In this document: positions 2,223-58,329 of the stretch, piece after piece
How the letters are laid out: the number at the start of each line of letters is the position of its first letter
Position numbering within the stretch: position 1 is the stretch's first letter
Assembly: GCA_002269645.1 (NCBI GenBank)
Contig: NIVC01002007.1
Span: 62,001-126,000 of the forward strand
Source of the DNA: Macrostomum lignano
Taxonomy: Eukaryota
Length of the DNA: 64,000 bases
Direction of reading: 5' to 3'
The notes under the pieces: model-generated
Seen by the model: only the letters and a program-made list of their open reading frames with translations
What the model was told of the DNA's origin: nothing
The model's database searches: none
Program-made: the position numbers and the translations under genes

Positions 2223-2520
2223 CAAAATATGCTATTATTGACGATGCAGATAATACCTAGTAATCCACATGTTTTTACTCGTTAAGTCGAGATTGCACGC
2301 GACAGCACAGCACAGGACGATAATTGTTAGATAAAATTAAATATCAGCGCGATAAATTAACGAAAATAATCTGAGGTCACAAAATATGCTATTATTGACG
2401 ATGCAGATAATACCTAGTAATCCACATGTTTTTACTCGTTAAGTCGAGATTGCACGCGACAGCACAGCACAGGACGATAATTGTTAGATAAAATTAAATA
2501 TCAGCGCGATAAATTAACGA
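2223..2520. repeat. 157-bp tandem duplication (2 near-identical copies)
   Basis: caaaatatgctattattgacgatgcag...gataaattaacga occurs at 2223-2363 and 2380-2520. Confidence 0.9.
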
Positions 2521-5637: not shown

Positions 5638-6030
<393 letters not shown>

Positions 6031-6435
6031 CAGTAAAACAGGCAAAACGGAAATGAAGTGAATCTGGAGATTCTACATGAAGAATCTCTCTGAGTCCCGC
6101 CCACCTCTAGTCAGGCCAATAAGTCACTCGCAGGGCCTGACTCGAGCTGCGAGTTCCAGTTAATTCGCTCAGAACAAGCCAAGAAAGACAGCGGCGCACC
6201 TGGATATGTTTACAGATTGTATTGCGTTAAACCCTACTCCCCATAATATAATACGAACAAGGTACCCCAAATCGTTACTGTTACTTTTATAAGTTATATC
6301 TGCTTCAGTTGGTTAAAGTTTTAATTTATGACAATTGCAATCACTATATCAATCTTGTTTTGGAGTCTAAACTAGAAATGAATTGATTTTTTAATTACTC
6401 GTACATCGGCTATAGCACATACCAGCTAAACTTAC

Positions 6436-6746
6436 AATCCACTTCGATCCTTTAAGTCGTTGGCTAGACTAGCAATCCACTTCGATTCTTTGAGTCGTTG
6501 GCTAGACTAGCAATCCACTTCGATTCTTTGAGTCGTTGGCTAGACTAGCAATCCACTTCGATTCTTTGAGTCGTTGGCTAGACTAGCAATCCACTTCGAT
6601 TCTTTGAGTCGTTGGCTAGACTAGCAATCCACTTCGATTCTTTGAGTCGTTGGCTAGACTAGCAATCCACTTCGATTCTTTGAGTCGTTGGCTAGACTAG
6701 CAATCCACTTCGATTCATTGAGTCATTGGCTAGACTAGCAATCCAT
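6436..6746. repeat. 38-bp minisatellite (gctagactagcaatccacttcgattctttgagtcgttg), about 8 copies
   Basis: Period 38 (6463 to 6501 etc.). It ends just before the acceptor cttccag upstream of the Tob ATG. Confidence 0.95.
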
Positions 6747-6776
6747 TGAACTTCCAGTTCAGTCGCCGTGCCCGCC

Positions 6777-7098
6777 ATGGACTCCGAGGTTGCCGCAGCT
6801 GTCGGGTTCATCGCCTCCTTCCTGTTCGGCCGAGTGCCTCGTCGCCGAGTCCAGCTGCTGTCCGAGGAGCTGGAGAAGGCGATTCGACTGAAGTTCACCG
6901 GCCACTGGCATGAGGACCAGCCGCTTCGGGGCGCCGGCTTCCGTTGCCTGTCAATCACCGGAAGCCGACCGGATGAACTGCTGCTGGCCTCGGCCAGGGA
7001 GGTCGGCTTGGACGTCGCCGAGCTCCTGGCGGTGCTGCCCGACGGTCTGACGCTGTGGATTGACCCCGGCGAGGTCACCTACCGGGTGGGGGAGAAGG
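6777..7098 (+). CDS. TOB: Tob/BTG family antiproliferative protein, exon 1 (BTG domain)
   Basis: MDSEVAAAVGFIASFLFGRVPRRRV..F.GHW...P.RGAGFRC..LTLWIDPGEVTYRVGEKG matches BTG Box A and Box B. Kozak gccATGg. Donor GG|GTGAG at 7098/7099, phase 1. Confidence 0.93.
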
Positions 7099-7155
7099 GT
7101 GAGCCTGGGGCGGCTTCACCGCCATGAATGTGCGCTGACGAGGGCTAAGCCGAGC

Positions 7156-7730
7156 CTACCTCTAACCTACCTCTAACCTACCTCTCACCTACCTCTAACC
7201 TACCTCTCACCTACCTCTCACCTACCTCTCACCTACCTCTAACCTACCTCTCACCTACCTCTCACCTACCTCTCACCTACCTCTAACCTACCTCTCACCT
7301 ACCTCTAACCTACCTCTCACCTACCTCTCACCTACCTCATACCTACCTCTCAGACCTCTCACCTACCTCTAACCTACCTCTCACCTACCTCTAACCTACC
7401 TCTCACCTACCTCACACCTACCTCTCACCTACCTCTAACCTACCTCTCACCTACCTCTAACCTACCTCTCACCTACCTCTAACCTACCTCTAACCTACCT
7501 CTCAGACCTCTCACCTACCTCTAACCTACCTCTCACCTACCTCTAACCTACCTCTCACCTACCTCTAACCTACCTCTCACCTACCTCATACCTACCTCTC
7601 AGACCTCTCACCTACCTCTAACCTACCTCTCACCTACCTCATACCTACCTCTCAGACCTCTCACCTACCTCTAACCTACCTCTCACCTACCTCTAACCTA
7701 CCTCTCACCTATCTCTCACCTGAAACTCAC
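7156..7730. repeat. 11-bp intronic minisatellite (cctacctctca / cctacctctaa)
   Basis: Seen directly in Tob intron 1. Confidence 0.95.
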
Positions 7731-7829
7731 CTACTCGTAACTTTCATCCAAGGACAACTTAAGTAGAAGGGCGCAACACTCAAAATCTATGGTAATTTTT
7801 TAAGGCAATTTTTCACTGAAAAATTCACT

Positions 7830-7995
7830 ACGGAGATAAGAATTTTTCATTTTTTCAGCACAAAAATTTGATATTGCTTTCGATAGGAGGCGGACCCAAT
7901 GTTCATCATTTGATATGTTGTGTCTTTCTTGTAGCTCTATTGATATTCATAAAGCTTTTTGTTCAGAAAATTGGGATTCTATGTTAATTTTTTTG
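7830..7995. mobile_element. Dispersed copy of one arm of the 1127-1752 foldback element
   Basis: ttgctttcgataggaggcggaccc..tttgatatg..tttcttgtagctctattgatattcataaagc..agaaaattgggattctatgttaatttt aligns by eye to the reverse complement of about 1520-1650. Confidence 0.65.
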
Positions 7996-8089
7996 CCTCC
8001 AAAAATTGCCATAGATTTTGAGCGTTGTGTCCTTCAACTTTCGTTGTCCTTGCTTTCACCTACATCCACACCCAAACTCAAACGCTGCC

Positions 8090-8310
8090 TCACATCCTAC
8101 CTCACACTCTACATCTCACGACCTACCTCTCACAACCTACTTACCTACCTCTCACCTACTTCACACCTTACATCTCACACCCTACATCTCACACCCTACA
8201 TCTCACACCCTACATCTCAAACCCAACATCTCACACCCTACATCTCACACCCTACATCTCAAACCCTACATCTCACACCCTACATCTCACACCCTAAATC
8301 TTACACCCTC
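8090..8310. repeat. 14-bp intronic minisatellite (cacaccctacatct) abutting the Tob exon 2 acceptor
   Basis: Seen directly. Confidence 0.9.
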
Positions 8311-8314
8311 TCAG

Positions 8315-8775
8315 GGCCGCTCCTGACGCTGTGCAGCCAGCGGTCTCAGCAGCGGCCTCAGCAGCCTCAGATGCAATTGATGCAGAAGAGCAGCTCGTCG
8401 TCCAGCTTCTTCACCGCGGCCGCCTTCGCCCAGACAAAATTCGGCAGCATCAAGCCGCGGCAGGCGGCGCCCGGTGACCGGCGCAGCGGCGGCGGCGGCC
8501 GGTTTGGGAGGAGCGGCCGGGACCTGCAGCGCAAGCCGCATCAGCTCTGCCAGCTGCCAGCCGTGCCAGCAGCCGCCGAGCCTCCACCAGCCTACAGCCG
8601 GTCCTGCTCGGCTCCTGCGGCAGATGAGACACCCGCGTTTTCAGCCGACTGCTGGGGGGCCGCATCGAGGGCCACGACGGCCGCTGCCGCTCCATGGTCC
8701 ACCGGCGGCCTGCCTGAGGTGCCGCCGTCGCCGCCGGTGCAGCACCAGATTTCAGATTCGAAGATTGGTATCTGA
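8315..8775 (+). CDS. TOB: Tob, exon 2 (low-complexity C-terminal region)
   Basis: Acceptor ctctcag|gg is phase-compatible and gives EKGPLLTL (Tob-type EKGPV..L). Contains FTAAAFAQTKFGSIK, matching the Tob-specific FTTASFAATKFGSTK motif as recalled. Stop TGA at 8773-8775. Confidence 0.85.
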
Positions 8776-8905
8776 GATTTGAAGGCTGAGATTTGAAATT
8801 TGAAGGCTGAGATTTGAGAGCTCAAGGCTGAGATTTGAGAGTTGAAAGCTGAGATTAAAAAATTAAAGGCTGAGATTTGAGATTTGAAGGCTTTAACAGG
8901 AGATT
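8770..8905. repeat. Degenerate ~21-bp repeat (ggctgagatttga...)
   Basis: About 6 imperfect copies of gctgagattt starting at the Tob stop. Confidence 0.7.
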
Positions 8906-9669
8906 TAAAGACTGATGTCTGAAGTTCGGCAATTAAATGTGGATTAAAATTTTGCTTAAAGTTTTTTAAGCACTTTCTGGACACTTCACAAGTTTCAGTG
9001 TAGGGCATTCATTCAATAGTGACCATTATTACAGTTTTGAGAATAAATGTATTTATTTCTGGTTTATGTCCGTTTTTACGTATTTGAGTAAGTTTAGCGT
9101 CAATTTTAAAGAGAAGTTACTCGTAATATAGACTACCTTGTTACCAAGAAAATTTCGGGGCACCAACTCTTCATTCTCCGCGACCTTTTAGAAGAAAAAA
9201 TAGAATTTAACTTGTGCGTTTTCACCTTTTGCTACTTGACTTCTAGTAAGCTTTTGTATTGCTAAATATTAAACAGTAGGCAGCCTCTATTAAATTAAAT
9301 TAGCATTCTTATCATTCTACTGACTCAGCTCTTTGAACCTATTCAACCTATCGAGGAATTTGAGCTTCTAAAAGCAGTATTTTAGATACAATCTTGTTCA
9401 TTGTTTCGAGGATTGAATAAAATTGATCCATTTTTGCAGTGCTGAGAGCAACCAGCTGCTCAAGCAAAAGTGTTTTTCTGTATCCCATCCGTTAAGCAAT
9501 AGTTCAAAAATTCGATTTATTGTAAAAAATGATACGAAACGCATGAAAAAACATTAAAAAAAGATTAAACAATTAGTCAGCTGTAGCGAACAGCTCAGCA
9601 CTACGAGAAAGCGTTCATCGAAAAAGTTGATTTTTGTTTTACTTAACTTACTCCGTCCCTCGTTCTTGC

Positions 9670-10050
9670 ACCCACCCCCGTTTCTCACTCCTGCACCCAC
9701 CCCACTCCCTACCTCTCACTCCTGCACCCACCCCACTCCCTACCTCTCACTCCTGCATCCACCCCACTCCCAACCTCTCACTACTGCACCCACCCCACTC
9801 CCAACCTCTCACTCCTGCATCCACCCCACTCCCAACCTCTCACTACTGCACCCACCCCACTCCCAACCTCTCACTACTGCACCCACCCCACTCCCTACCT
9901 CTCACACCTGCACCCACCCCACTCCCAACCTCTCACTCCTGCACACACCCCACTCCCAACCTCTCACTACTGCACACACCCCACTCCCCTTCTGTCACTC
10001 CTGCACCCACCCCACTCCCCTTCTGTCGCTCCTGCACCCACCACACTACC
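9670..10050. repeat. 31-bp minisatellite (cacccaccccactccctacctctcactcctg) between convergent Tob and ZNF106-like 3' ends
   Basis: Period 31 (9721 to 9752). The ORFs over it are artefacts. Confidence 0.92.
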
Positions 10051-10365
10051 CATCCCTCATATCATGTAGCCACCCCGAATTCCCAGTAATTTCTTCCAGG
10101 TGCAAAGTATTTTAGGAATCGGAAGCTTACTACCTATATCGGTATCAGGAACTGGAAAGATTAAGGCACAATAGTATTAAAAATGATGAGCCAATAACTT
10201 TAAGTCTTTTTGCTACCTAACGGTGGATTGATAAATATACGAGCGTAATCACAAAAACTTATCAAAAATGCGACTACACTACTACTGAAAATGTTTTATA
10301 AGTATTATAAGTGCGCAACACACAAAATTTGAACTAAAATCATTCGGGCTGAAAATCGGAGGCTC

Positions 10366-11026
10366 TCAGACCAGCCCGAGGTTCAACATCGGCACTTTCG
10401 ACGACGAGTCAGCTGGCGGCGCCGGCAGCGGCACCGGAAGGCTGTCGCTGATGACCAGACAGCCGGAGGCGTCGCCGCTGACCACGTGACGCCCAACGTC
10501 GTAGAAGGCGATGGTCGTCACCGCGGACCCGGAGGTGCTCGGAGTCAGGCGGACTGTTGGCACATCCGGGAAGGCTTGAGGCTGCTGCTGTTGGTCCAAA
10601 CAGAAGCAGAGTACAGAGCCGTCTGATTGGCCAGCGAACAGCCAATCACAGCGCAGGCCGAGGTGCAGGCAGGTGAACTCGGCTTGGCCAACGGCCGGCA
10701 GCTCCCAGATCGGCGTCGGCGAAGCTTCGCTTTCGCCGAAGGAGATCCGGTGGGCCAGCAGACGCCGGCGGTTGACAACGAAGGCGACGTCGCCGCCGGG
10801 TGCGACGCGGATCGCCAGCGCCGGCCCATCGTCCAGGGCGACGCCGCTGCTCCTGCATGGTGCCAGCCGGGCCAGCAGCTTCCCGGTGCGCTCGTCGGCC
10901 ACCAGGAGGTCCGGCGTGGCGCGGCAGCCGCGCAGGAGAACTCGGCGACCGCCTGGCTGCTGCAGAGCCGCTTCGAGAGAGACAACAGCGCCCCCCTCAG
11001 CTTCATCCACCGAGTCTATGATTGTT
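10366..11026 (-). CDS. ZNF106: ZNF106-like protein, exon 5 (WD40-like repeats, apparent terminal exon)
   Basis: WD-like strings FTCLHLGLRCDWLFAGQSDGSVLCF and VTTIAFYDVGRHVVSGDASGCLVI. Acceptor gttccag|a at 11027/11026 is phase-compatible with exon 4. Confidence 0.7.
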
Positions 11027-11049
11027 CTGGAACATTGGGAAGATGAAGC

Positions 11050-11362
11050 GTTGTTGCTATGGTCTCAGGTTACTTTTACTATGGTCTCCTGTTGCTATGG
11101 TTTCCTGTTGCTATGGTTTCCTGTTGCTATGGTCTCCTGTTGCTATGGTCCCGGGTTCCTGTTGCTATGGTCTCAAATTGTTTTTGTTAAGGTCTCGAGT
11201 TCCTGTTGCTATGGTCCCGGGTCCCTGTTGCTATGGTCTCAGGTTACTGTTGCTATGGTCTCCTGTTGCTATGGTCTCCTGTTGCTATGGTCCCGGGTTC
11301 CTGTTGCTATGGTCTCAAGTTGTTGTTGTTATGGTCTCGAGTTCCTGTTGCTATGGTCTCGG
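11050..11362. repeat. Intronic minisatellite (cctgttgctatggtc variants)
   Basis: Fills ZNF106-like intron 4. The CCYG-repeat ORFs are artefacts. Confidence 0.9.
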
Positions 11363-11378
11363 GTCCTAGGCCACTCAC

Positions 11379-11879
11379 CTGACCGAGTCGGCCGCCACGT
11401 CGTACTTAACTACGCGTCCATTCTCGCAGCCGGCGTACACCGAGCCCCAGCGCAGGCAGGCAGCGGTGGGGGCGGACTCCAGCTGCCGCAGGCGCATCCG
11501 CGCTCCGGTGCGGACGTCGTGGCCAACCAGGGCGGTGGCCTCGGCGAAGAACAGCAGCGGCTCGGCTGTCGACGTCAGGAGCAGCCAGGTTGAGGCCTCG
11601 GCTCCGGCGCTGGGCTCTCGGTAGACAGTCAGGCATCGGTGGGTGCGCAGCGAGTAGCGCCTAACAGCGCCATCCGCGCCGGCGGTGAACAAGTAGCCCT
11701 GCTGTACAGCGGCGCAGAGAACCGCGCCTGCCGTGGCGTCGCTGTCAGCAGCGTCGTCAGCCGCCGAGATTCGGCCGGGGAACACGAGTCCCGGGGCCGA
11801 CGACGCGGAGGAGGAGGCTTCGGCCGCGCCGGCGGCGCCGCTGCGGAACGACTTGGCCGTCGATGAGGAGTCGAGCGAC
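11379..11879 (-). CDS. ZNF106: ZNF106-like protein, exon 4 (WD40 repeats)
   Basis: VLCAAVQQGYLFTAGADGAVRRYSLRTHRCL and WGSVYAGCENGRVVKYD are WD40-like. Acceptor caacag|g, donor AG|GTGAGT. Confidence 0.75.
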
Positions 11880-11899
11880 CTGTTGGGTGGTATATCAGC

Positions 11900-12035
11900 G
11901 GTGGGTCAGCGGTGGTCAGAGGTGGGTCAGCGATGGGTCAGTGATGGGTCAGAGGTGGGTCAGAGGTGGGTCAGAGGTGGGTCAGCGATGGGTTAGAGTT
12001 GGGTCAGCAGTGGGTCAGCGGTGGGTCAGCGGTTC
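11900..12035. repeat. Short intronic repeat (gtgggtcag/a variants)
   Basis: Seen directly in ZNF106-like intron 3. Confidence 0.8.
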
Positions 12036-12149
12036 CTAGGAGGCATTGGTTTCCTTGGTCAGTGACTTGGCCCACGGATCAGTCAGTAGGTCAGTGGGTC
12101 ATTGAATGCAAAGACTCATTGGCAGGTAAATCAAGGGGGCCTGACAAAC

Positions 12150-13153
12150 TTGGCGGTGCTGAGCTGCCCCGGTCTCGATGGCGGTTTCGCTGACTCAAGC
12201 GGTTGCAGGGCCTGCGGCCGCTGCTCCGCCGCTCGCTTGGCCCTTCTGGTCTCGTCCAAATCCACGTCCGAGCTGGAGCTGGCGTGCAGGTACTCGCGCA
12301 GCGCGGCCGCAAACTCCGGGTCCTGACGGCGCGGACGACTGCGACGTAGCTGCGTTTCGGAGGCCGCCCGACGGAAACTGCCGCCGCCGCCGGCAGCAGC
12401 ACTGGCGGCTCTGGCGGTGCCCGCGTCGGAAGACGCCGACGAAGCGTTCGTTGAGGAGGCGTCGGCGGCGGCGGTGGCATCCGTTTTTTCAGCTTGTTGT
12501 TGCCGATTTCCAGGAAACACTGCTGTTGTCGTCACAGCGGCCGCGGACGCCGGCCGAGGCACCGCCTGTGGATCGCTGCGTCGAGACCGGGACGACAGAA
12601 CATCGCTGAGCACCTCCGCTGGCGGATGCGGCGGTGATGGCAGCTTCGGACGCGGTGGAGCTTCTTGAAAGCCGTTCGGCTGGTGTCGGTTGGACGGCTG
12701 GCCTGACTGGGGCAGCAGCAGGCGACTCAGCGTCGAGTTGATGAGCTCAGCGTCGCGAGGTGAGTCGACGGACTGCGGCTGCTGCTGCTTGGCCAGCTGG
12801 TCCGACTGCAGCACCTTCTGCACCAGCTGGTGCCGCACCGTGTCCGTCGAGTTGCCTTCGTCTTCGTCCGCCGTGGTGACCGCTCCGCTTTTGTCGTTGT
12901 CATCGTCGTCGTTGTCATTTTCGACATCTTCTTCGATCTCTTCGTCGTAGGCCTCGATGACTTCAACGCCGTCGAGAAGACGCGGCGGTTGACGCGGCGT
13001 GTTGGCGACCTCGTTGAAGTTGTCGGGCTCGTCCTCGACCTCGAGCTGATGACGCCGCCGAGGAGTTGAGTCGCAAGGAGGCTGGAACGGCGAGTACTGA
13101 CTGGGCCGAGGCGACAGGTCGGCGAACTGGGTGAGGACGGCATCCTCGGGAAT
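12150..13153 (-). CDS. ZNF106: ZNF106-like protein, exon 3 (acidic/low-complexity region)
   Basis: Acceptor tttccag|ATT is phase 0 and continues IKQQ|IPEDAVLTQF..EEIEEDVENDNDDDD..RHQLVQKVLQ in one open frame. The 3' donor is uncertain (12150 or 12195, both phase 2 and compatible). Confidence 0.65.
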
Positions 13154-13254
13154 CTGGAAAGACTCTGCGGGATATGTGGGAAATTCCCGTCATCGCCTCG
13201 TCTGGGAGACAATTATCTTACATTATAAAATACATTAGAAAACTAACTAAATAA

Positions 13255-14805
<1,551 letters not shown>

Positions 14806-17124: not shown

Positions 17125-18183
17125 TTAATTGTTGTTCACCGGCTGACATCGGCTGCGCCTGGCTCTGCGAATCCGTGCGGTAGCAAGATTGTAAGCGACA
17201 AAGGTGGCGGTAGCCAGGGCGCACAGAATGTTCTTCATGGGCTTCACGATGTAGATGAGGACTGGATAGATATCAGTAGCTATTGGCACCTGTATCGCCC
17301 CAATGCAGCCAGTTATAGCCAACGGCTGGTAGAAGAAGAAGCCAACAATGAGATGCAGCAGTTTCATTTGCTGGTGAACTCGGTCTAGGTCGCGAAGGAA
17401 CCTCTGGTTCAGTTGCCGTCTACCGCCGAGAACAGTCCTGCGCAGTACTACGCTTGGCCGCTCGTTCGCGTTGCAAGTAGTCAAACAGCCGATGAAAACC
17501 AGGCCGCAGATGTTGCACCACACCACTGGTATGTACACGTTGATCCAAAGTTGGACAAAAGCAATGACCGAGTAGATTTTTTCGTAACCATCGACCACTC
17601 GGCACTCGTAGATGGTGCTGTTGCTTTCGCTGGTGACGATGCTGCTGTACATCCAGATGTAGTTCAAATTCATTGTCAGGATCACGGCGCTGGCTAGGGC
17701 GGCCCCAATTTTGAGCCGTAGCGGGCTGAAGTGCTTCAGTCCGAAGCGCAGGTCCATCGAAATGCAGCAGCGCTCCAGAGCAATCAGCATAAGCAAAGAG
17801 GTCTGCAAATCCATAGTGAGGTTCTCACCGAAATTGAGCAGCTTGCATAGCCAGGTTAGAGCGCGCAGATTGCCAACTATCTGGTTGTAGTGACGATTCA
17901 CCAGAGTGAACGCGGCTTGGTTCAGTAGGCAGGCGACGTCGATTGCGCAGCTCCAGCGCAGGAGGAGCAGACAGCCCAGTTTGTAGCGGCTGAACGTTGT
18001 CCCGTTCAGGCAGTGAATGCAGACAATAAGTAGCGCGACTGCGCAGAGATAGAGCAGCAGCATGACGCTTTGCAACTGCAGCTCTTCATCGATGCGAGAT
18101 GTCTGTGTACCCATCGGTTCGGAGTATATGCCCTGTTCAGTGACGTTCGCAACCGGCGGCCTATCACCAACTCCAGCCTTCAT
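17125..18183 (-). CDS. Intronless class A (rhodopsin-like) orphan GPCR, nested in ZNF106-like intron 2
   Basis: 352-aa ORF with about 7 hydrophobic segments, N-terminal NVT sequon, TM3-top Cys (WLCKL), LIALERC (DRY equivalent), ECL2 Cys (YECR), TM5 YIP, TM6 FFFYQP and a basic C-tail. Confidence 0.88.
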   Translation of the reverse strand: MKAGVGDRPPVANVTEQGIYSEPMGTQTSRIDEELQLQSVMLLLYLCAVALLIVCIHCLNGTTFSRYKLGCLLLLRWSCAIDVACLLNQAAFTLVNRHYNQIVGNLRALTWLCKLLNFGENLTMDLQTSLLMLIALERCCISMDLRFGLKHFSPLRLKIGAALASAVILTMNLNYIWMYSSIVTSESNSTIYECRVVDGYEKIYSVIAFVQLWINVYIPVVWCNICGLVFIGCLTTCNANERPSVVLRRTVLGGRRQLNQRFLRDLDRVHQQMKLLHLIVGFFFYQPLAITGCIGAIQVPIATDIYPVLIYIVKPMKNILCALATATFVAYNLATARIRRARRSRCQPVNNN

Positions 18184-24878: not shown

Positions 24879-27840
24879 ATGACAACTAAGAGCAGTAGAG
24901 CAACACAGCACAATTTAGCTGGTAGCCACACTGATGCCCATGCAGACAATTCACTTTTGCATCGCCTTAAGGAGGCCATTGTGCAGGACAATCCCACTGC
25001 TCTTATGTGCATTAAAACTGCTGCAAAAGACTGCAGCGAGGTAAATAACTGGGTTGCCTGTTTCAATTTTAATTATAGTAAAACTTAATCTTCAGTGATC
25101 TTTAAGCATTTGCAAACAATCTGCTTCCAGGAGCAATGGGATCGGGTATTCAACCAGTTGAACAGCCGCCACCAAGCCTACGTGTGTCAGAAAACGGAGC
25201 AGCACTGTAATGAGCTGCGCGAATTGCAGGTTAGCTTTTTAGATTGCAAATGTATATTTATTCATGTGTGTTTCTATATTTCTACTAACAGTAGCTTAAA
25301 TCGATATCTGCGCGAAAATTATTTCTTTTGCAGAATACTGTAAGGCGAAACCTGGCTACAGAGCGTCGCCTACTTGACGAGCAGCTTGCCAATCACAGGA
25401 GCGCCATTGCTGATGACCCCGGATTGGCCACCAATCGCAAGTCCAAGGGCTCGGGAGGCAAGTAGTTGAAATTTTCAATTGAAAATTTCCATAACCCTGC
25501 TTTTGATAATATTTAGGTCCAGGAGCTCGACCTTCTTGAAATAATGTTGAATATCCCAACTGTCTTGGATTGCCTTGTGAACTTAAAACTGCCTGTAAAA
25601 ATTGACAAAAAACTTTTGGCCACCTGTAATAGCTGGTTTTTTTTAATTCCAGATCTGACCCCAATCAGCACAGAGGAGAGGCGCAACCTGTGCGATCACC
25701 TGGCTGAGGTGAGCGCTTAGGTTGACCAATTGGAGTGACAGGAATGGCGCCAAGGTGTGATAGGAGGGGCGCCAAGGAGTGACAGGAATGGCGCCAAGGT
25801 GTGACAGTAATGGCGCCAAGGAGTGACAGTAATGGCGCCAAGGAGTGACAGGAGGGGCGCCAAGGAGTGACAGGAATGGCGCCAGGGAGTGACAGGAGTA
25901 GCGCCAAGGAGTGACAGGAATGGCGCCAAGATTAATGACAGGTATTGGTAGCAGAGCCGCCAAGGTAAAAGTAAAGTGGCGCAAGAGTCTCTTTACTCAC
26001 CTGCTCGCAGCCCGCCAGCTTGGCAACCGAGGCCCAGCCAATTCCAAACAGCGGCGCTTCTGTAGGCTCCGAAGCAGACGAATTAGCTCGACTCCATTTG
26101 GCGCTGGCTGCCAAAGAGCGCGAGCTGGCGCTAGCGGAGAACCAACTGGCCCGCAGTCGGCACCTGTGCGACAGTCTGCTGGGCCGACTGACAGCTGCGG
26201 AGGCCGAGCTGCAGTACCTGCGAAATCGGAGCAGCAACAGGCGAGTCTCTATGATAGCTGTCGGCGGGGACGAAGGCGATGCGGCCGAACAACAGGTGAG
26301 GAAAAATCGTCAAGTTGTTGAACTGCAAACGATCTATCTGTGTGCTAATATTTCTACTGTAAGTAGCGCAGTCAGTAGTTTATAATCTATCTGTGTGCTA
26401 ATATTTCTACTGTAAGTAGTGCAGTCAGTAGCTTATAATCTATCTGTGTGCTAATATTTCTACTGTAAGTAGTGCAGTCAGTAGCTTATAATTTATCTGT
26501 GTGCTAGTATTTCTACTGTAAGTAGCGCAGTCAGTAGTTTATAATCTATCTGTGTGCTAATATTTCTACTGTAAGTAGTGCAGTCAGTAGTTTATAATCT
26601 ATCTGTGTGCTAATATTTCTACTGTAAGTAGCGCAGTCAGTAGTTTATAATCTATCTGTGTGCTAATATTTCTACTGTAAGTAGTGCAGTCAGTAGTTTA
26701 TAATCTATCTGTGTGCTAATTATAAGCAGTACATTATTCCTACCTACTAATTTTAGGCTCAAACGGTAGCAGGAGACGCCGCCGCCGACAGTCTGCGCCG
26801 TTCTCTGGCCGATCTGGAGCGCCGGAGAATCATCGACACCGCAGACGCTCTTGACTTGCCGGGCGATCCCGCTGAACTGGAGCGGCGCTACGACTGTCTG
26901 CAAGTGGAACGGCGCGAGGTTGAGGCTGCCCTGACTAGGGTGCCCCGGACCGACTCTGCGCATCACACTTGGCACAGCGTGCGGGATCAGGTCTGGCTGC
27001 CATCTACAATTGAGTTTCTTGAATTCCATAATTGCATAATTCATAAAGTTTATGGTCATAAATTTCATAATAATTCCTAAATTGTATATTTAATGCTTTC
27101 AGAATCATCAAATTCGTAATTCATTTTTCCATAAGCCATAATTATCTCAATATCAAAGCTCATAATTCATAAATTTCATAATTTTAAAGTTACATCTTTA
27201 ATAAATTACATAGTTCATAAATAATTTCTTGATTATTACATTTTTATAAAAGTTCCTGACACTCTTAATAAGCTACTGTGGGTATTTTCTACTAAGTAGT
27301 ATTAATCGTATTTTAAACAGAAACCTATTTGAAAAATTTTTCCAAACCTTCACTCAGAGTCGCAGGATTAAAAAAGTAGTGCGAATCTCTCTGACTGGAC
27401 AAAAAAGGCCTCACGTAGGTGACGGTTGCGGACAAGTTTAGCTGCTAGAGTCATCATGATCAACTTGCAAACTTTATTATTTATACAATCTATCATTTTG
27501 TAATCGATTTTCTAACACGCTGTAAGACTGTAATTACTCTTTACCTGTATCAATCACGATAACCAGTTGTTGCGCGATTTACACCCGTGAGGGCCAACCC
27601 CCAAGACAGAGAGTCAGCGGAATGGGCAGGTGGATGTGTATTGATTTCGCTGAAGGCGTTGCGCCCAGGGTGCCCCGCAACCCTTGTGTCCCGCTACATA
27701 CATGCCAAACATCTTCATTCACGATTCTCATGAACCCCGAAACTCGAATTGGCCAGGAGCTGCTCGAGCAGAAGTTGGACAGCATCGATCGCGAGCTGGT
27801 GCACCTGCGCAACAGTCTGAAACATTTCCACCTGATTTGA
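24879..27840 (+). CDS. MPHOSPH9: MPHOSPH9 (MPP9)-like coiled-coil protein, 7 coding exons, about 347 aa
   Basis: Exons 24879-25040, 25131-25229, 25334-25457 (GC donor), 25653-25708, 26011-26295, 26757-26990 and 27757-27840 join in frame. The C-terminus ERREVEAALTRVP...RDQELLEQKLDSIDRELVHLRNSLKHFHLI matches the MPHOSPH9 tail EKDQIEAALSRMP...NQEALEDRLERINRELGSVRMTLKKFHVL as recalled. Confidence 0.78.
25732..25930. repeat. 22-bp intronic minisatellite (ggagtgacaggaatggcgccaa)
   Basis: Seen directly. Confidence 0.92.
26333..26720. repeat. 53-bp intronic minisatellite (tctatctgtgtgctaatatttctactgtaagtagtgcagtcagtagtttataa), about 7 copies
   Basis: Period 53 (26333 to 26386). Confidence 0.95.
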
Positions 27841-29880: not shown

Positions 29881-31375
29881 ATGGCTGGTTCAGTTGAGCC
29901 CTATGACACTCATACTGGCCAAAGAATCTGCCTTGTTATTCGGGACTGGCAACTAGCTTCATTGAATGGAATTCCTTCAATATTTGAAAGTCTTGGCTTT
30001 AGAACTAAATACCAAGACCTGCCTAATGGACTGGCCGATGACTGGCTAAGTACAGAGCTCATGAAATATGCCAATGAGACTGGAAGCTGTTTTGTTTTGT
30101 ACTTTGCTGGCTGCTGCCTATGCAATTATCAACTGACTATCAATGGAGCACCATTTGATTTTCACTCAGTTATTGAACCATTTATGACATCCACTCAGTG
30201 GAAAGGAAAGCCAAAGATTTTCTTTTTTCAGGTGAGAATGACCCACCTGGCTGGTTAATTTTTTTTGTAAATGTATAAGCCTAGTTAAAATCCAACATTT
30301 TACATTTTTAAAATACTTTTTATTGTAACCCAATTAGAATTTTATAAATCATGACCTTACTAACCTTATGTTTCATAACTCATTTTACTTTAGTCCCATC
30401 TTTCTTATGAACCTTATATAACCTTACTAGGTATGGCCAGATGATATTGCATTCTTTACCTAACATACCTGATCCTGAAATACATGTACCTGACCTCAAC
30501 TTACTTGACCCAGATCTAATTTACCTGACTAACCATGACCTGATCTACCTGAACTAGACCTGAATTAACCCAACCCTGACCTAGACCTGAATTAACCCAA
30601 CCCTGACCTAGACCTGAATTAACCCAACCCTGACCTAGACCTGAATTAACCCAACCCTGACCTAGACCTGAATTAACCCAACCCTGACCTAGACCTGAAT
30701 TAACCCAACCCTGACCTAGACCTGAATTAACCCAACCCTGACCTGACTACCAGGTCTGTGACCTTGACCTCTGTGACTCTGACCTGACCTACCTGCCTTG
30801 ACACACCTGATCATGACCTGACCCTGACCTACATGATCTGACCTGGCCTATTTGACCTTGACCTGACCGTGACCTACCTGACCCTGACCTGACAGAACTG
30901 ACCCTGACCTGACCCTGACCTGACCCTAACCTACCTGACCCTGACCTACCTGACCCTAACCTACCTGACCCTACCTACCTGACTCCAACCTACCTAACCC
31001 TGACCTACCTGACCCTGACCTGACCCTGGTCTGACCCTGACTTGACCTACTTAGCCTCCCCTCGCGCAGGTGAGCCGCACGAAGCCGCTGCTCCCCACGG
31101 ACGCGGGCCCAATCGGCCCCGGCTATTCCGAGACATTCCCTGCCAGTTGGACCGACTTTGCGGTCATCCGCGCCGGCGAGCACCTGACGGAGGCCGTCCG
31201 GTCTGCCCTGCAGGACAAGGCGGTCGCAAGGCAGGACTTCCGGTTCGATGTGGTGCAGCGAATTCACGAGAACTATAGCCAGCAGCTTGAGCATGGAGTC
31301 AGTCCGGACTTCTTTGCCAGCACCGGGGCTCTGCTGAAACCGCTGTACCTTATGAGTACAAGTATTTATCGATAG
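29881..31375 (+). CDS. Caspase-fold (peptidase C14-like) module 1, predicted inactive; exons 29881-30231 and 31070-31355 (or to stop 31375)
   Basis: RICLVI..FESLGF..SCFVLYFAGCC..KGKPKIFFFQ|VSR (p20) and TDFAVI..STGALLKPLYL (p10). His is replaced by Cys and QACRG by QVSRT. Splice junction is phase 0. Confidence 0.8.
30530..31045. repeat. 27-bp minisatellite (caaccctgacctagacctgaattaacc) grading into degenerate (cctgac)n
   Basis: Seen directly in the intron of caspase-like module 1. Confidence 0.9.
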
Positions 31376-31549
31376 AATACCCTGTATCTATTAGAGGACT
31401 TATATTAGAGAATTTATAGTAGAGGACTTTTATACATAATCTCGCCTCTTCCACTGGCTGTTCCGGTCTGAAAATTTATAAATATATAGTGCCTTGCCAA
31501 GTGATCTTTTTCACATTTCAATAGTTTTGTTGCGATTTATAATTAATGA

Positions 31550-32250
31550 GTCAGTGACCCCACAATACCCATGACCTGAGACGAATGATCTACTTACTGA
31601 CCTATGATAAATGACCCAATGACCCGTGATGGAAGAGCAGGAGGACCCACTGACCCATTACGAATGACCCACTGACCCATGATGACTGACCCACTGACCC
31701 ATGACGACTGACCCACTAACCCATGATGACTGACCCACTGACCCATGATGACTAGCCCACTGACCTACGGTGAATGACCCACTGACCAATGGCACACTGA
31801 CCAATGACGACTGACCCACTGACCCATGATGACTGGCTCACTGACCCATGATGACTGGCTCACTGACCTACGGTGAATGACCCACTGATCCATGACGAAT
31901 GGCACACTGACCCATGACCACTGGCTCACTGACCCATGATGACTGACCCACTGACCCATGACCGCTGGCTCACTGTCGACTCACAATGAATGATCCACTG
32001 ACCCATGACGAATGACCCACTGATCCATGATGACTGACCCACTGACCCATGATGACTGACCCACTGACCCATGATGACTGACCCACTGACCCATGACGAA
32101 TGACCCACTGACCCATGATGATTGACCCACTGACCCATGATGACTGGCCCACTGTCGACCCACAGTGAATGACCTGCTCTCGACCCACAGTGAATGACCC
32201 ACTGTCGACCCACAGTGAATGACCCACTGACCCGTGATGAATGACCCACA
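31550..32250. repeat. Degenerate minisatellite (tgacccactgacccatga...)
   Basis: Seen directly. The HHGSVGQSSW ORFs are artefacts. Confidence 0.9.
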
Positions 32251-32290
32251 GCCCAACCCTGATCCTAAATGCCTCCAACCCTTGCTGCAG

Positions 32291-33876
32291 TCCGACCCGG
32301 CACCCACATGCAGCAGGATCCCGACGAGCTGCTGGCTGCCTACCCGCTGTCCAGACGAGGCCACTGCCTCATCGCCACCATGAAATTCGGCGACTGTTCA
32401 CCGCCCTTCAAAGCCGACCTGCCGGCCCGGGCCGAAGACTACGAGCGCGCCCTGCTGGGCCTCGGCTTCGACAAGCAACGAATCGTCCGGTTGGACGACG
32501 TGAACTCCGGGTCGGTGAACTCTGAGCTCGGCCGGCTGGCAGCGTCAGCCGAACACAACCCGCTGGACTGTCTGGTGGTCATCCTGATCTGCGAGTACGG
32601 CTTCCTTCTGACGCCGCCGTCGGGGGTGGTTCACCCGGGCGTCAGGTCGGAGCAGGTGGGCTGTTAATGCATTCGCTTCTTAATCGAAATCCTGCTCACA
32701 ATCCCCTGACCCACAATCCCTGACCCACAATCACCTGACCCACAATCCTTTGACCCACAATCCCTGACCCACAATCCCTGACCCACAATCACCTGACCCA
32801 CAATCCCTGACCCACAATCCCCTGACCCTCAATCCCTGACCCACAATCCCCTGACCCACAATCCCTGACCCACAATTCCCTAACCCACAATCCCCTGACC
32901 CACAATCCCCGGACCCGCAATCCCCTGACCCACAATCCCCTGACCCACAATGGCCCTGACCCACAATCCCCTGACCCTCAATCCCCTGACCCACAATCAC
33001 CTGACCCAAAATCCCCTGACCCACAATCTCCTGACCCGCAATCCCCTGACCCGCAATCCCTGACCCACAATTCCCTAACCCACAATCCCCTGACCCACAA
33101 TCCCCGGACCCGCAATCCCCTGACACACAATCCCCTGACCCACAATGGCCCTGACCCTCAATCCCCTGACCCACAATCACCTGACCCACAATCCCCTGAC
33201 CCGCAATCCCCTGACCTGCAATCCCCTGACCCACAATCCCCTGACCCACAATCCCCTGACACGCAATCCCCTGACCCAAAATCCCATCCCCGCTCTGCAG
33301 GGCATGGACTCCGGCTACTATCGCTACGGCAGCAGCAGGTACAGCGTCCCTAGCAACCAAACCGACGCCGTCCTGGAGAACCCGCTGCGCCCGAAACTTC
33401 GCCTGCACGAGGAGGTGTTCAGCCGGTTTAGCTCGGACCGCTGTCCAGCCCTGGCCGGCAAGCCGCGTCTGTTCATCGTGCACACCCCGCGCGAAATGGA
33501 ACGCCTGGACTGTATGCAGCGAATTCGCCGGCACCACTTTGGTTTCATGCTGAACCCCGGGCGGCTGGAAGAGTACATCTCCCTGACCCGCTGCCAGGAG
33601 TTTCAGCTGGGCCCAGACTTCTACATCCTGTATGCGCCGCTGCCCTTCATGGACAGCCATCGGGTGCCGAACCCGGCCCAGGAGCTGGCCAAGGCGATGC
33701 TGACAGCAGGACAGCAAAATTCTGACCGCGGCGCCGAGCTGACGGACATGGTGCTGGAGCTGATGGCCAAGGTGGGAGACAGCGGTTGCGCCGAGATCGC
33801 CATGCCGAAGGTGTTCAGCACCCTGACTAAGCTGGTGCGGTTCCCTGCCAGCGACGGTCGGGTCGGTCGCTATTAG
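32291..33876 (+). CDS. Caspase-fold module 2, predicted inactive; exons 32291-32655 and 33301-33876
   Basis: YPLSRRGHCLI..ERALLGLGF..DCLVVIL, then CPALAGKPRLFIVHTPR (QACR replaced by HTPR), PDFYILYA and STLTKLVRF. Donor CAG|GTGGGC and acceptor ctgcag|GGC are both phase 0. Confidence 0.82.
32700..33285. repeat. 15-bp intronic minisatellite (aatcccctgacccac)
   Basis: Seen directly. The collagen-like GQGIV ORF on the minus strand is an artefact. Confidence 0.93.
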
Positions 33877-34184
33877 CTTAGATCGGCGCAGGTTTTTAAA
33901 CTGGTGCCATTAATACGAATTTCAAATGCTGTGTTTTTTACTAACAATAAGTAGCATAGTTAGTACGCTGTCTTTTCGAATTTAGGAAAACTGTTTTATA
34001 ATTTTGACATGGAGTCAAACGGAGTCTTAAAAAAGTTTTTTTATCAGTAAAATACAATTGTGTAGAGATTTTTATTGACAAATGGCAGCCTTGTTTACTT
34101 TTTTACGCGTAGATTAACAGGCAGGATGGTACACAGAAGGGTAGGCAGACGGACAGACAGTGACAAAAACAAAAAGGCAGACAC

Positions 34185-34192
34185 AGACAGAC

Positions 34193-34261
<69 letters not shown>

Positions 34262-34274
34262 AAGACAGACAGGC

Positions 34275-34345
<71 letters not shown>

Positions 34346-34398
34346 GAGGCAGACAGGCAGAGACGGGCAGGCAGTCAGACAGACAGACAGACAGACAA

Positions 34399-34453
<55 letters not shown>

Positions 34454-34540
34454 GGCAGACAGACAGGCAAACAGACAGGCAGACAGACAGACAGACAGAC
34501 AGACAGGCAGGCAGGCAGACAGGCAAACAGACAGACAGGC

Positions 34541-34623
<83 letters not shown>

Positions 34624-34670
34624 GACAGACAGGCAAACAGACAGACAGACAGGCAAACAGACAGACACAG
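34185..34670. repeat. (GACA)n microsatellite
   Basis: Seen directly. Confidence 0.95.
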
Positions 34671-34698
34671 TCAGCCGCACCCCGCCGCTGCCCCGGCC

Positions 34699-35370
34699 AT
34701 GCCGCAGCAGTACCCGTGCAGCCGGAAGCTCTGCGTGCTGTATCGCGACAATCCCCGGGTCCGACTGCAGCCGATGCGCGACGCCTTCGACAGCCTCCAG
34801 TTCGAGCGCCGGGAGCGCAACGTGCTGAGTGGCGAGACCAACCGGGAGGTGTACGAGTACTTCGATACCCTCGCCGACGATCAGAGCTGCGACGTGTACG
34901 ATTGTCTGGTGGTCGGCCTGTCGGGCTGCTACAACGCCCTGGACGGCTGGGGCATCAACGTGTCGGGCCTGGACGTGGACTTTGACCGCCTGTTGGAGCC
35001 GTTCAGCAAGTCCCCGGTGTGGCGCTGCAAGCCCAAGGTGTTCATCGTTCAGTACGATAACGAAGGCCTGCTGACTAAGTCGAGGATCTGCTGCGACGCC
35101 AACAGGCTGCCGAATGGGTCGCAGGCGGCTGCGGCCAGCGGCCTTCCCGTCTTCGCTGACACGGCACTGGTGCTGGGGCATGGCGGCCCACAGTTCACCG
35201 TCACCCTGTGCGATTTAGTCACCAAGTTTGGCAACCAGCTGGAGTTTCACCAGCTCATGACTCTGGTGAACCAGCGGGTTCTGCAGCTGCCGAGGCCTGA
35301 CGATATGGCGCCCTGGTCTGTGGGAGTCGTCAGCCACCTCACCAAGAAGCTCTATCTCGGTCAGGTATGA
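34699..35370 (+). CDS. Caspase-fold module 3, predicted inactive (single exon; may be spliced at both ends)
   Basis: YPCSRKLCVLY..FDSLQF..DCLVVGLSGCY..PFSKSPVWRCKPKVFIVQYDNEG..ADTALV..FTVTLCDLV..LMTLVNQRV..SHLTKKLYL. His is replaced by Cys and QACRG by QYDNE. The stop overlaps a strong donor CAG|GTATGA. Confidence 0.82.
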   Translation: MPQQYPCSRKLCVLYRDNPRVRLQPMRDAFDSLQFERRERNVLSGETNREVYEYFDTLADDQSCDVYDCLVVGLSGCYNALDGWGINVSGLDVDFDRLLEPFSKSPVWRCKPKVFIVQYDNEGLLTKSRICCDANRLPNGSQAAAASGLPVFADTALVLGHGGPQFTVTLCDLVTKFGNQLEFHQLMTLVNQRVLQLPRPDDMAPWSVGVVSHLTKKLYLGQV

Positions 35371-45068: not shown

Positions 45069-45604
45069 GTCTGATTCCATTCTGCCTGTAAAAATATGAA
45101 AAAGTATCTGATGATAATCCAAAAATATAAATTATTACACATAATGGACAGCTCCCACCAGATCCCACATTCAGCCGCAGCGATAAACGGTTGATTTTGG
45201 CCACCCGGTTCCCAGGCTGATTAGGGATCGATCCCAGCCCGGATCAGCTATTAATAACGAGATTCCATGGGAGAGTAGCTGGTAAAATCGAATCGAAACG
45301 GATGAGGCGGACCAGCAGCTTCCGTGCCAATCTGGCTGACCGCTCGGGGATTTCTGAGGAGTTTTATCCCCCCCCCCCAATCCTTCGGATTCTTTCTTTG
45401 CGCCAACCGATTTGGATAATTGTTTACGCTGCCCGCTGCGCTTCGCTTTGTGGGGGATTTTTCGAATTTAGGGATCGCCTTGCAATAATAATACGGGGAT
45501 CGGACTGGCTCTGGGGGGAGGGGCAGCTTCAGTTCCCACGCTTCTGTAACTTCCTGCAGCTGCGACTTCGCTTGATTGCTGCGCCTGATAAACAGCGATT
45601 AGTG

Positions 45605-46385
<781 letters not shown>

Positions 46386-47250
46386 GGTCTGCCAGCCTCG
46401 GTGTTTCCTCATCGACTAATTCAGCTCTCTTTCCCTTTCCCGCGGCCGTTTTCCGCCATCAATCTATCCAAGTGTACCTATTTATCTTCACTTAACTCTC
46501 TCCTGTGATCTGTGCAGCCACCCAACCTAAACAGTTCCCCGTCTTCATCCTAGCAGTCCAGCATTATCGGCCATGTTTGCGTCGGCGGTAGCGGCGGTGT
46601 CAGGTTCAGCCAGGAGCGGTGGCTCCGGTGGGTGCCACCAAAAGAGGCCCGGGGGAAAAACTTTGCTCAGCCGGTGCCGTTCATGTTTCACGGCGGCTTG
46701 CATTGCCGACAGACTCGCCGATCGGCTTGAAACCCCTCTCGAGTGTCTCGGGCGTAATGAGGGCCGAGGCAAGTTTATCTGGGAGCAAGAAGTGGCCTAT
46801 GGGAAATCCTCCCAGGTGCCAAGTGGACGGCGGCAGCAGCCTGTTTATTGTCAAACCATCTTCACCCGATGGGCCTCTTTAACAGGAGGAGAGGAAATGT
46901 GCAAGGGAAATCTAGGCCGAAGGGATATTTGGGATAACAATCTGATTTGGGAGCTAAGTGAGCGATATTAAGGTCAAGATTTCGATGTGTTTATCGAGGA
47001 CCTTCACTCCGGTCCCTGAAGCAGCGGGGTTGTTAATCGGGGCTGCCGATGGCCGAAGTCAGCTCCTCTTACAGGTGTGGAGGTTGGAAAACAAGAAGGG
47101 CCTTCAAACAGTCGTGCAGACGTTCGCTTTCACTAGAGGCAGTTAGCGCCTGAAGTGGACCACCTTAATAAACGCTATTTCGATACATATCGGCAATCGG
47201 GATGATTTTCGGCTGCAAGTCTTGCCTCGTTAACTGAAATTCCCCACACC

Positions 47251-57065: not shown

Positions 57066-57463
57066 AATTAGATGCCAAGATGGTCATAAAGAAGAGCGTC
57101 ATGTTGCGGTCGGTCAGAAGACGCCAAAACTAGGCAAGCCTGCAATCTACAGCTTTCTCGATCATTTAGCCGCGTTGGATATGGGAACTGCTTCTCCCCT
57201 CTCCCACCCTCAGACCCAGCAGCCAATTGCAAGCGCTGCAGTCTCGGATGAGGCGTCCAGCATCAAAACCCTGGCAGCCAATGGCGCCCCGGCCCGCAAT
57301 TCCGGCCCCCTCTGCCCCCGCCGCCACCCCCGCCCTCTTCTAAAAGAGAAATCGGCCGCTCAAGCAAGAGAAGACCCACAACAGCAAAGCCGCTCAGAGA
57401 CAAATTTGAAACAGAAGAAAATTCAAGCTGGATAGCAACACGGAGCGGCTCCTTCACGACTTG

Positions 57464-58188
57464 ATGAAGGACAGGAAACTGGCGCTGCAACATCTGGTCG
57501 GAATGCAGCAGCAGCAGCAGCAGCCGCCAGCTCCGCAGTCGCCGCAGTCGCCAACACAGCAGCAGCAGCAGCCGCCGCCGCCGCCTCCGCCGCCGCCGCC
57601 ACCGCCGCTCTTCCTGCCGCCTCCGCTGCCGTCGCTGCAGTTCAGCCCCGACCAGGTTGGCCGCGTCTGCGAGACCCTGGAAGAGTCCGGCGACATCGAA
57701 CGGCTCGGCCGGTTCCTCTGGTCGTTGCCAGCCAATCCGCTGCTGTGGGAGGCGCTGAACCGTCAGGAGTCCATCCTGAGGGCCCGCGCCATTGTGGCCT
57801 TCCACACCGGCAACTACAGGGAGATGTACCACCTCATGGAGCTGCACCACTTCGGCAAGGAGTCGCACGCTAAGCTGCAGACTCTGTGGCTGGAGGCGCA
57901 CTACCTGGAGGCCGAGAAGCTCCGGGGCCGCCCTCTCGGGCCGGTGGACAAGTACCGGGTGCGCAAGAAGTACCCGATGCCCCGGACCATCTGGGACGGC
58001 GAGCAGAAGACGCACTGTTTCAAGGAGCGAACCAGAGGCCTGCTGCGCGAGTGGTACCTGCAGGACCCGTACCCCAACCCGGCCAAGAAGCGGGAGCTGG
58101 CCTCGGCCACGGGCCTGACGCCCACCCAGGTTGGCAACTGGTTCAAGAATCGGAGGCAGCGCGACCGGGCCGCGGCGGCCAAGAACAG
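57464..58188 (+). CDS. SIX3: SIX3/6 (Optix) homeobox transcription factor, exon 1 (SIX domain plus homeodomain)
   Basis: [92 protein letters not shown]. The QKTH tetrapeptide is diagnostic for Six3/6. Donor AG|GTGAG follows KNR as in other Six3 genes. Exon 2 was not identified. Confidence 0.97.
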
Positions 58189-58329
58189 GTGAGAGTTTTA
58201 ATCTGCGCTTGAGGAGAAAACTAGAGATGCTGGTTAGATGACGCAAATGCAGGTGTTTAGATGTCTTAGGTCTTGGTTCTAGATCTAAGATATACAGCTA
58301 AGCGAGGTGTTCTTATAGATGCTACTTGG

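Follow-up and report, generated by a model that had tools for sequence, protein, structure and literature searches.

Three consecutive caspase-fold units without a catalytic dyad in Macrostomum lignano, probably a head-to-tail cluster of separate genes

A 64,000-nucleotide stretch of the genome of the flatworm Macrostomum lignano (assembly GCA_002269645.1, contig NIVC01002007.1, positions 62,001 to 126,000 of the forward strand; hereafter the window, numbered from its first letter) carries at positions 29881–35370 of the plus strand three caspase-fold units, termed m1, m2 and m3, in all of which the catalytic His/Cys dyad has been replaced. These are very probably three separate dead-caspase genes arranged head to tail. 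The overall explanation favoured here, with somewhat better than even confidence, is that they encode separate, prodomain-less, functional pseudo-caspases that regulate by dimerisation and are possibly co-expressed.

Gene models and public annotation

Five coding blocks interleaved with tandem-repeat DNA were recognised in this interval and, through canonical splice sites, give three products. Their frames are intact, with no stops or frameshifts in any of the three units, as the original prediction had stated. The features are as follows (splice junctions are marked by a slash).

29881–30231 + 31070–31375, plus strand: m1, 218 aa; intron CAG/GTGAGA ... CGCAG/GTG
29881–30231, plus strand: m1 exon 1, p20-like half to KPKIFFFQ; Gly at the His position (YFAGCC)
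30232–31069, plus strand: m1 intron, GTGAGA...CGCAG, phase 0; mostly tandem repeats, with TRF arrays at 30548–31048
31070–31375, plus strand: m1 exon 2, starting VSRT (Ser at the catalytic Cys); p10-like half with C-terminus ...LLKPLYLMSTSIYR; stop TAG 31373–31375
31376–32290, plus strand: m1–m2 spacer, 915 bp; acceptor CTGCAG 32285–32290 at its end
32308–32655 + 33301–33876, plus strand: m2, 307 aa; intron CAG/GTGGGC ... CTGCAG/GGC
32308–32655, plus strand: m2 exon 1, own ATG (MQQDPDELL...); Glu for His (VILICEYG)
32656–33300, plus strand: m2 intron, GTGGGC...CTGCAG, phase 0; 15-bp tandem repeat nearly throughout, array 32697–33285
33301–33876, plus strand: m2 exon 2, with GKPRLFIVHTPRE, Pro at the catalytic Cys position; p10-like half with C-terminus ...STLTKLVRFPASDGRVGRY; stop TAG 33874–33876
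33877–34698, plus strand: m2–m3 spacer, 822 bp; includes (ACAG)n microsatellite 34183–34667
34699–35370, plus strand: m3, 223 aa; single exon, no intron; own ATG (MPQQYP...); Gly for His (GLSGCY), Asp for Cys (QYDNE); C-terminus ...HLTKKLYLGQV, then stop TGA

Each unit has its own ATG 10–19 residues upstream of the first core strand and its own stop 3–10 residues past the last caspase strand (LYL/VRF); the caspase-3 alignment ends 3 residues before the chain end. No further caspase-like modules were found by tblastn in the rest of the window, and no coding exon was seen within 10 kb downstream of m3. The m3 stop codon overlaps a good-looking donor, GGTCAG/GTATGA at 35362–35370; public models terminate at that stop.

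All three units have public counterparts. In GenBank, m1 corresponds to PAA55237.1/PAA61670.1 (BOX15_Mlig015211g1/g3), complete at 218 aa and identical to the model read from the sequence, and m2 to PAA55236.1/PAA61671.1/PAA55242.1 (BOX15_Mlig012903g1/g4/g5), 309–313 aa and marked "5' partial" because the frame is open a few codons upstream of the ATG; two of the GenBank m2 models have the same exon structure as that given above. Public m3 proteins of 224–225 aa start 1–2 codons (3–6 nt) ahead of the ATG and end at the same stop. UniProt automatically names m1 and m2 'caspase family p20 / CASPASE_P20 domain-containing protein'. The annotation deposited in GenBank consists of the 'coregenes' portion of a transcriptome assembled from RNA-seq under guidance of the genome (StringTie/TACO); spliced-leader and poly(A) sites mapped by experiment set the limits of its genes, and novel transcripts with low expression were dropped (PMC5730564). 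The three units are already on record there as three expressed genes without assigned function.

Three near-identical copies of the locus exist in the genome. The window is 99.2% identical over 11.7 kb to NIVC01002782.1, which encodes m3, and 98.5% identical to NIVC01002781.1, and a further copy lies on a 213-kb contig. Positions 1–14218 of NIVC01002781.1 differ from the window by 11 mismatches and 89 gap openings, and these indels are probably uncorrected long-read error at a contig end. On that contig PAA55242.1 (BOX15_Mlig012903g4, gene at 2638–4218) is a frameshifted m2 translation with two segments only in the true frame.

The caspase fold

The reading of three consecutive plus-strand caspase-fold units was upheld, although by evidence of unequal strength: the assignment is sound for m2 and m3, through Pfam and PDB sequence matches and, in the case of m3, Foldseek, and for m1 comes by homology to m3 together with a weak structural match. 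Against the Pfam Peptidase_C14 profile (PF00656, gathering score 21.4 bits) the predicted family membership was borne out for m2 (27.1 bits, E 4.1e-6) and m3 (22.9 bits, E 7.7e-5), both matching near the full profile, but not for m1, which scored 15.2 bits (E 0.017) and fell under the cut-off. Sequence matches of m2 and m3 in the PDB were led by effector caspases 3/6/7 and reconstructed ancestors, and with m1 alone nothing above noise was retrieved (PRL phosphatases, E about 0.7). The link to m1 is a BLASTP match with m3 (E 2.4e-12, 25% identity across 147 aa), and positions 26–230 of an m1+m3 profile align end to end with caspase-3 residues 41–247 of the 250-residue chain.

Fold models were built for m1 and m3 by AlphaFold2 (AF2) and compared with the PDB by Foldseek. 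The best 50 matches of the m3 model were all caspases (best E 3.8e-8, template modelling (TM) score about 0.5), as were 11/11 matches of the m1 model at E <= 0.001 (best E 2.6e-4, TM 0.3–0.4), and the N-terminal half of the m1 model reached a predicted local distance difference test (pLDDT) score of about 70–78. Two results count against the fold reading: the mean pLDDT of both models was 55–56, which is low confidence, with the p10-like halves poorly modelled, and comparison of m2 with the m1/m3 profile gave no direct link (hhalign probability 3.6%). Word-seeded homologue searches with m3 and m2 returned nothing beyond the proteins themselves and an alignment-seeded search returned Mytilus relatives only; with the searches nearly empty, the AF2 alignments were shallow (11 sequences) and the models therefore poor. 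Pairwise identity among the three proteins is 16–25%. The caspase motifs quoted in the original prediction are present, except that m1 has SCFVL instead of DCLVV and m2 has KPRLFIVH without the Q.

Loss of the catalytic dyad

Dyad positions were read from three alignments, in which the references were caspase-3, an ancestral effector caspase and active caspase domains, with the following result.

m1: Gly at the His of SHG (FAGC); Ser at the Cys of QACRG (QVSRT)
m2: Glu at the His of SHG (ICEY); Pro at the Cys of QACRG (HTPRE)
m3: Gly at the His of SHG (LSGC); Asp at the Cys of QACRG (QYDNE)

In context these motifs read YFAGCC and FFFQVSRT in m1, VILICEYG and FIVHTPRE in m2, and GLSGCY and FIVQYDNE in m3. 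The predicted absence of the dyad from all three units, with the substitutes G/S, E/P and G/D, was thereby confirmed against active caspases, and since both His and Cys are replaced in each protein, m1, m2 and m3 are non-peptidase homologues and not active caspases. The predicted lack of a CARD or DED prodomain likewise stood, Pfam finding Peptidase_C14 only in all three proteins, whose N-termini are 10–19 residues long. In the alignment to active caspase domains m3 lacks the segment of the substrate-binding L3 loop (GYxSxRN) and m1 has it in reduced form; in m2 about 40 additional residues lie between the SHG-equivalent and the GKPR strand. The C-terminal strand motif LTKxLY(F/L) is recognisable in all three (ALLKPLYL in m1, STLTKLVRF in m2, SHLTKKLYL in m3), where it aligns to IVSMLTKELYF of caspase-3; AF2 gave this strand no confident model.

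Relation to known dead caspases and proposed mechanism

Among the closest known systems are Caenorhabditis elegans CSP-2/CSP-3 and mosquito CASPS18, small prodomain-less dead paralogues that are encoded by stand-alone genes and inhibit or enhance an active paralogue. m1–m3 are likewise small, prodomain-less, dead and stand-alone; CSP-3, in contrast, is a small-subunit-like fragment, whereas m1–m3 keep both p20-like and p10-like halves, and no specific sequence relationship to CSP-2/CSP-3 or CASPS18 was detected in the homologue searches. Effector caspases 3/6/7 are the best matches for m2 and m3 and share with the three proteins a short N-terminus and the same core order to the LTKxLYF strand, but differ in that His and Cys are replaced in m1–m3 and the L3 loop is absent (m3) or reduced (m1).

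The proteins would act non-catalytically through the C-terminal strand, the one feature besides the core that all three appear to have kept. In caspases this (beta6) strand forms the dimer interface, and pairing of m1–m3 with an active short effector-type caspase, or with each other, would tune caspase activation. The closest relatives of known structure, the effector caspases, form dimers constitutively. Procaspase-8 is the partner of cFLIP(L), active paralogues are the targets of CSP-3 and CASPS18, and to our knowledge every characterised dead caspase domain acts on caspases, occupying the dimer interface. Because the core and, apparently, the interface strand are kept while the dyad (in m3 also the substrate loop) is lost and no recruitment domain is present, regulation by hetero-dimerisation may be put forward, by analogy and tentatively, as the best-supported mechanism. 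The proteins are, on the other hand, very distant from every caspase and without a prodomain, their active-site loops are missing or remodelled and m2 carries its insertion, all of which would suit functional caspase-fold proteins unconnected to caspases, in which the fold had taken on an unrelated role in binding or structure. Such re-use is unlikely, given that no C-terminal feature is better kept than the dimer-interface strand motif and that the characterised dead caspase domains known to us, those of cFLIP, caspase-X, CSP-3 and CASPS18, all act on caspases.

The likeness to cFLIP(L) (CFLAR) lies in a caspase-fold domain without the His/Cys dyad, which in cFLIP heterodimerises with a caspase through the beta6 interface. 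The sole PDB sequence match of the N-terminal 135 aa of m3 was cFLIP (3h11_A), a weak match (E 0.12) that places SGC opposite SRG and QYDNE opposite QNYVV; judged on this alignment, the similarity appears too weak for an orthology claim. cFLIP differs in having two DEDs for recruitment to the death-inducing signalling complex (DISC), while m1–m3 are without a prodomain; flatworms are reported to be without FADD (PMC11463336).

In the coral caspase-X a dead and an active caspase domain are present in one complementary DNA (cDNA)-verified chain, the dead domain dampening the active one, and the arrangement has been modelled on the cFLIP/procaspase-8 beta6–beta6 interface (PMC4715348). The best non-Macrostomum matches to the m1+m3 profile were predicted mollusc and spider proteins (E 1.5e-7 to 3e-5), as listed.

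Physella XP_059144760, predicted: two Pfam C14 stretches, active + dead
Larinioides CAL1288021 (spider), predicted: two Pfam C14 stretches, active + dead
Mytilus coruscus CAC5407345, predicted: 782 aa, CARD + dead + dead

The original prediction had presumed that dead caspases are single-domain proteins; caspase-X and the predicted mollusc and spider two-domain proteins contradict this, so that a fused architecture would not be unprecedented. In these proteins the domains stand in one chain, mostly dead + active or with a CARD, and here the evidence points to three separate genes, all dead and CARD-less. The Mytilus proteins resemble m1 and m3 in having Gly at the His position (LSGK/LSGE in Mytilus). 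CAC5407345 and its relatives form a sizeable family of dead CARD-caspases in mussels, with a CARD and one or two caspase domains, and in every copy seen SHG is replaced by SG(K/E/G) and QAC by (Q/H/R)T(Y/F). A shared ancestral His-to-Gly pseudo-caspase lineage with Mytilus was considered but not shown; the best Physella match is to its active domain, and no specific dead-lineage relationship is therefore shown.

Functional genes or relics

The three proteins are diverged almost beyond recognition, yet each retains an open frame and the core strands, and we therefore infer that the genes are functional rather than decaying. They are very fast-evolving or very old lineage-specific genes: an exhaustive search of 1.84 billion representative proteins with the m1+m3 profile gave only 4 non-self matches at E<1e-3. 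That extreme divergence, the loss of the dyad in all three with different substitutes each time, the shortened substrate-loop regions of m1 and m3 and the lack of any literature or expression record found would also suit transcribed relics, dead caspase duplicates in neutral drift without function. This is nevertheless improbable. The frames are open over 218–307 codons, and open frames arose in 0/20000 composition-matched shuffles for m1, 6/20000 for m2 and 30/20000 for m3. A codon-position structure with strong third-position GC bias is evident in m2 and m3 (GC at second positions (GC2) 0.40–0.44, at third positions (GC3) 0.83–0.85), and neighbouring genes are alike in this respect. The splice sites are intact, the fold-defining strands have been kept at 16–25% identity, which neutral decay would not preserve, and the genes are present in an expression-filtered annotation.

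Two genomic copies, one of them NIVC01002781.1, match the window in 2253/2253 coding bases, the differences being microsatellites and about 2 single-nucleotide polymorphisms (SNPs), so that no ratio of non-synonymous to synonymous substitution (dN/dS) is obtained between copies. For Mlig012903 and Mlig015211 no expression record turned up in full texts or in the supplements of three M. lignano transcriptome papers. No paper discussing these three genes was found; the one broad survey of lophotrochozoan caspases names M. lignano in connection with a kinase-prodomain caspase and nothing else.

In composition m1 is sharply divided, exon 1 having a GC of 0.41 and GC3 of 0.36 and exon 2 a GC of 0.61 and GC3 of 0.75, similar to m2 and m3 (GC3 0.82–0.85). 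The contrast may stem from a chimeric origin of m1 or from a mutational boundary at this place. Exon 1 lies at the edge of a 2–3 kb AT-rich block (24–31% GC), with the composition boundary in the intron at about 30600.

Three genes or one chain

It had been predicted that the three modules are exons of one gene, cis-spliced from 31355 to 32291 and from 33861 to 34675 into a single ~800-aa chain (about 750–800 aa) of three dead caspase domains. The frame arithmetic of both joins is correct (31355, phase 1, to 32291; 33861, phase 0, to 34675), the inter-domain linkers would be of about 28 aa, like those of real two-domain caspases such as Physella XP_059144760, and two-caspase-domain chains do occur in other animals. 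In-frame joins are, however, expected by chance: of the three GTs in the final 45 nt of m1, two are in the phase needed, the m2 tail has GTs in all three phases, and 131 AGs covering every phase are available in the (ACAG)n array upstream of m3. The proposed donors are followed by in-frame stops at a distance of 6 and 4 codons, and every module has its own ATG. The dominant cis-donor motif of M. lignano is GT[GA]AG (PMC8629364), which the m1 donor GTGAG fits and the proposed fusion donors GTACA (or GTATT) and GTCGG, in the contexts TGA/GTACAA and CGG/GTCGGT, do not. In none of the three genomic copies does the RNA-seq-based GenBank annotation contain a coding sequence (CDS) joining m1 to m2 or m2 to m3, yet within m1 and within m2 it does span introns filled with repeats, so that repeats were no bar to the assembler's use of spliced reads. 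A search with m2 likewise turned up no fused GenBank protein, m1 and m2 belong to differently named transcript clusters (Mlig015211 and Mlig012903), and the annotated m3 CDSs begin 3–6 nt ahead of the ATG and not at 34675. The single chain is accordingly very hard to credit.

Two considerations qualify the reading as separate genes: the separateness of the transcripts is taken from the depositors' annotation, and two UniProt models, A0A1I8H9E4 (411 aa) and A0A1I8I508 (392 aa), join m1 exon 2 to m2 in frame, reading ...LYLMST/TVRPGTHMQQ... with a junction that maps to 31361/32288. Taken literally, these models would mean a partial fusion, with m2 spliced onto the p10-like exon 2 of m1 and with m1 exon 1 standing apart or serving as an alternative 5' exon, and the GC3 of 0.36 in exon 1, against 0.75–0.85 in exon 2, m2 and m3, would fit such a chimeric history; but this too is scarcely credible, since in the window sequence the junction needs the donor CAA/GTATTT and an intron ending in TG instead of AG, both models start mid-domain at the m1 exon-2 acceptor without a Met, A0A1I8I508 carries an extra internal deletion which, like the missing Met, is typical of automated prediction on a fragmented assembly, and in the transcript-based GenBank m1 the two exons are spliced together, with the stop at 31375. 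Both UniProt models, which belong to an older automated annotation, are probably prediction artefacts. The locus is thus to be read as three genes, the triple-domain architecture being unsupported; what remains of the original prediction is its own fallback, a cluster of three inactive paralogues.

Spacers and possible co-expression

About 30–39% of M. lignano genes receive a 35-nt spliced leader and about 15% lie in operons (PMC8629364 among the sources); the trans-splice acceptor motif is [TC]TNCAG, and operons have been called where adjacent same-strand genes are <1000 bp apart after repeat subtraction and the downstream gene is trans-spliced (PMC8629364). The m1–m2 and m2–m3 spacers of 915 and 822 bp come to about 309 and 337 bp without tandem arrays, a 22/44-bp tandem repeat at 31644–32249 making up 606 bp of the former, so that the three genes have the same orientation and repeat-adjusted spacers <1000 bp. 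A CTGCAG acceptor 17 nt upstream of the m2 ATG fits [TC]TNCAG exactly, and the start of one annotated m2 CDS falls at codon 32290, on the final base of the acceptor AG, as we would expect if the terminal G of the leader had stayed on trimmed reads. A long AT-rich upstream block (2 kb, 24–31% GC) is found at m1 only.

The short same-strand spacers, the AT-rich block upstream of m1 alone and the trans-type acceptor of m2 suggest co-expression, which might take the form of a polycistronic unit resolved by the spliced leader. If the unit were polycistronic, the acceptors of the original prediction would serve trans-splicing or definition of the 5' untranslated region (5'UTR) and not cis-fusion. 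Several observations speak against an operon. Annotated m2 starts vary by copy (codons 32284, 32290 and 32302), and the varying 5' ends may reflect coverage loss beside repeats rather than a mapped trans-splice site; AGTCAG upstream of m3 and the AG before m1 miss the trans-splice motif; and with the leader joined at 32291, its terminal AUG would open an out-of-frame upstream open reading frame of 31 codons over the m2 start. No spliced-leader sequence or spliced-leader RNA gene and no Rfam match was found in the window. AATAAA is absent after m1 and m2, where only variants occur (TATAAA 31477, AATAAG 33946, AGTAAA 34046), which is uninformative. The further proposal that the genes are co-transcribed from the AT-rich promoter region, with transcripts resolved by the spliced leader or occasionally cis-spliced to give chains of two or three domains, and that their products assemble with one another into a non-catalytic caspase-like complex of several subunits, is improbable; if true, the locus would correspond, in gene-split form, to the two-domain pseudo-caspase proteins of molluscs and corals.

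C-rich tandem repeats sharing a TGACC(C) core make up nearly all of both introns and the m1–m2 spacer (30548–31048, 31644–32249 and 32697–33285), with repeat units of 27, 22/44 and 15 bp, a GC skew to -0.7 and the same strand bias throughout the cluster. The (ACAG)n tract upstream of m3 (34075–34698) is an open frame, (TDRQ)n, of about 200 codons that is continuous and in phase with m3, giving rise to a spurious open reading frame (ORF) of 431 aa. Like (ACAG)n/(CTGT)n arrays with long ORFs are present at 5526–6056 and 45600–46500.

Other features of the window

The following were noted elsewhere in the window.

17125–18183, minus strand: single-exon ORF, 352 aa, with several hydrophobic segments; 'ALERC' is reminiscent of the E/DRY box in rhodopsin-type receptors; Pfam gave no match at E<=1e-3
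about 24900–27840, plus strand: upstream neighbour, multi-exon, 349 aa in the public record, coiled-coil in appearance, with no Pfam match; a 2-kb AT-rich block lies between it and m1
57461–58192, plus strand: exon for a SIX-class homeobox protein (Pfam SIX1_SD E 3e-45, Homeodomain E 8e-13), preceded by a poly-Q/poly-P tract

Significance

Pseudo-caspases are rare and informative, and cFLIP, CSP-3 and CASPS18 each showed a dead paralogue tuning a cell-death protease. The M. lignano locus is best filed as an uncharacterised addition to this known class, unusual in that three very divergent dead copies stand side by side in a genetically tractable flatworm. As M. lignano is a regeneration and stem-cell model with RNA interference (RNAi) and transgenesis, the cluster is testable for roles in cell turnover, germline apoptosis and immunity.

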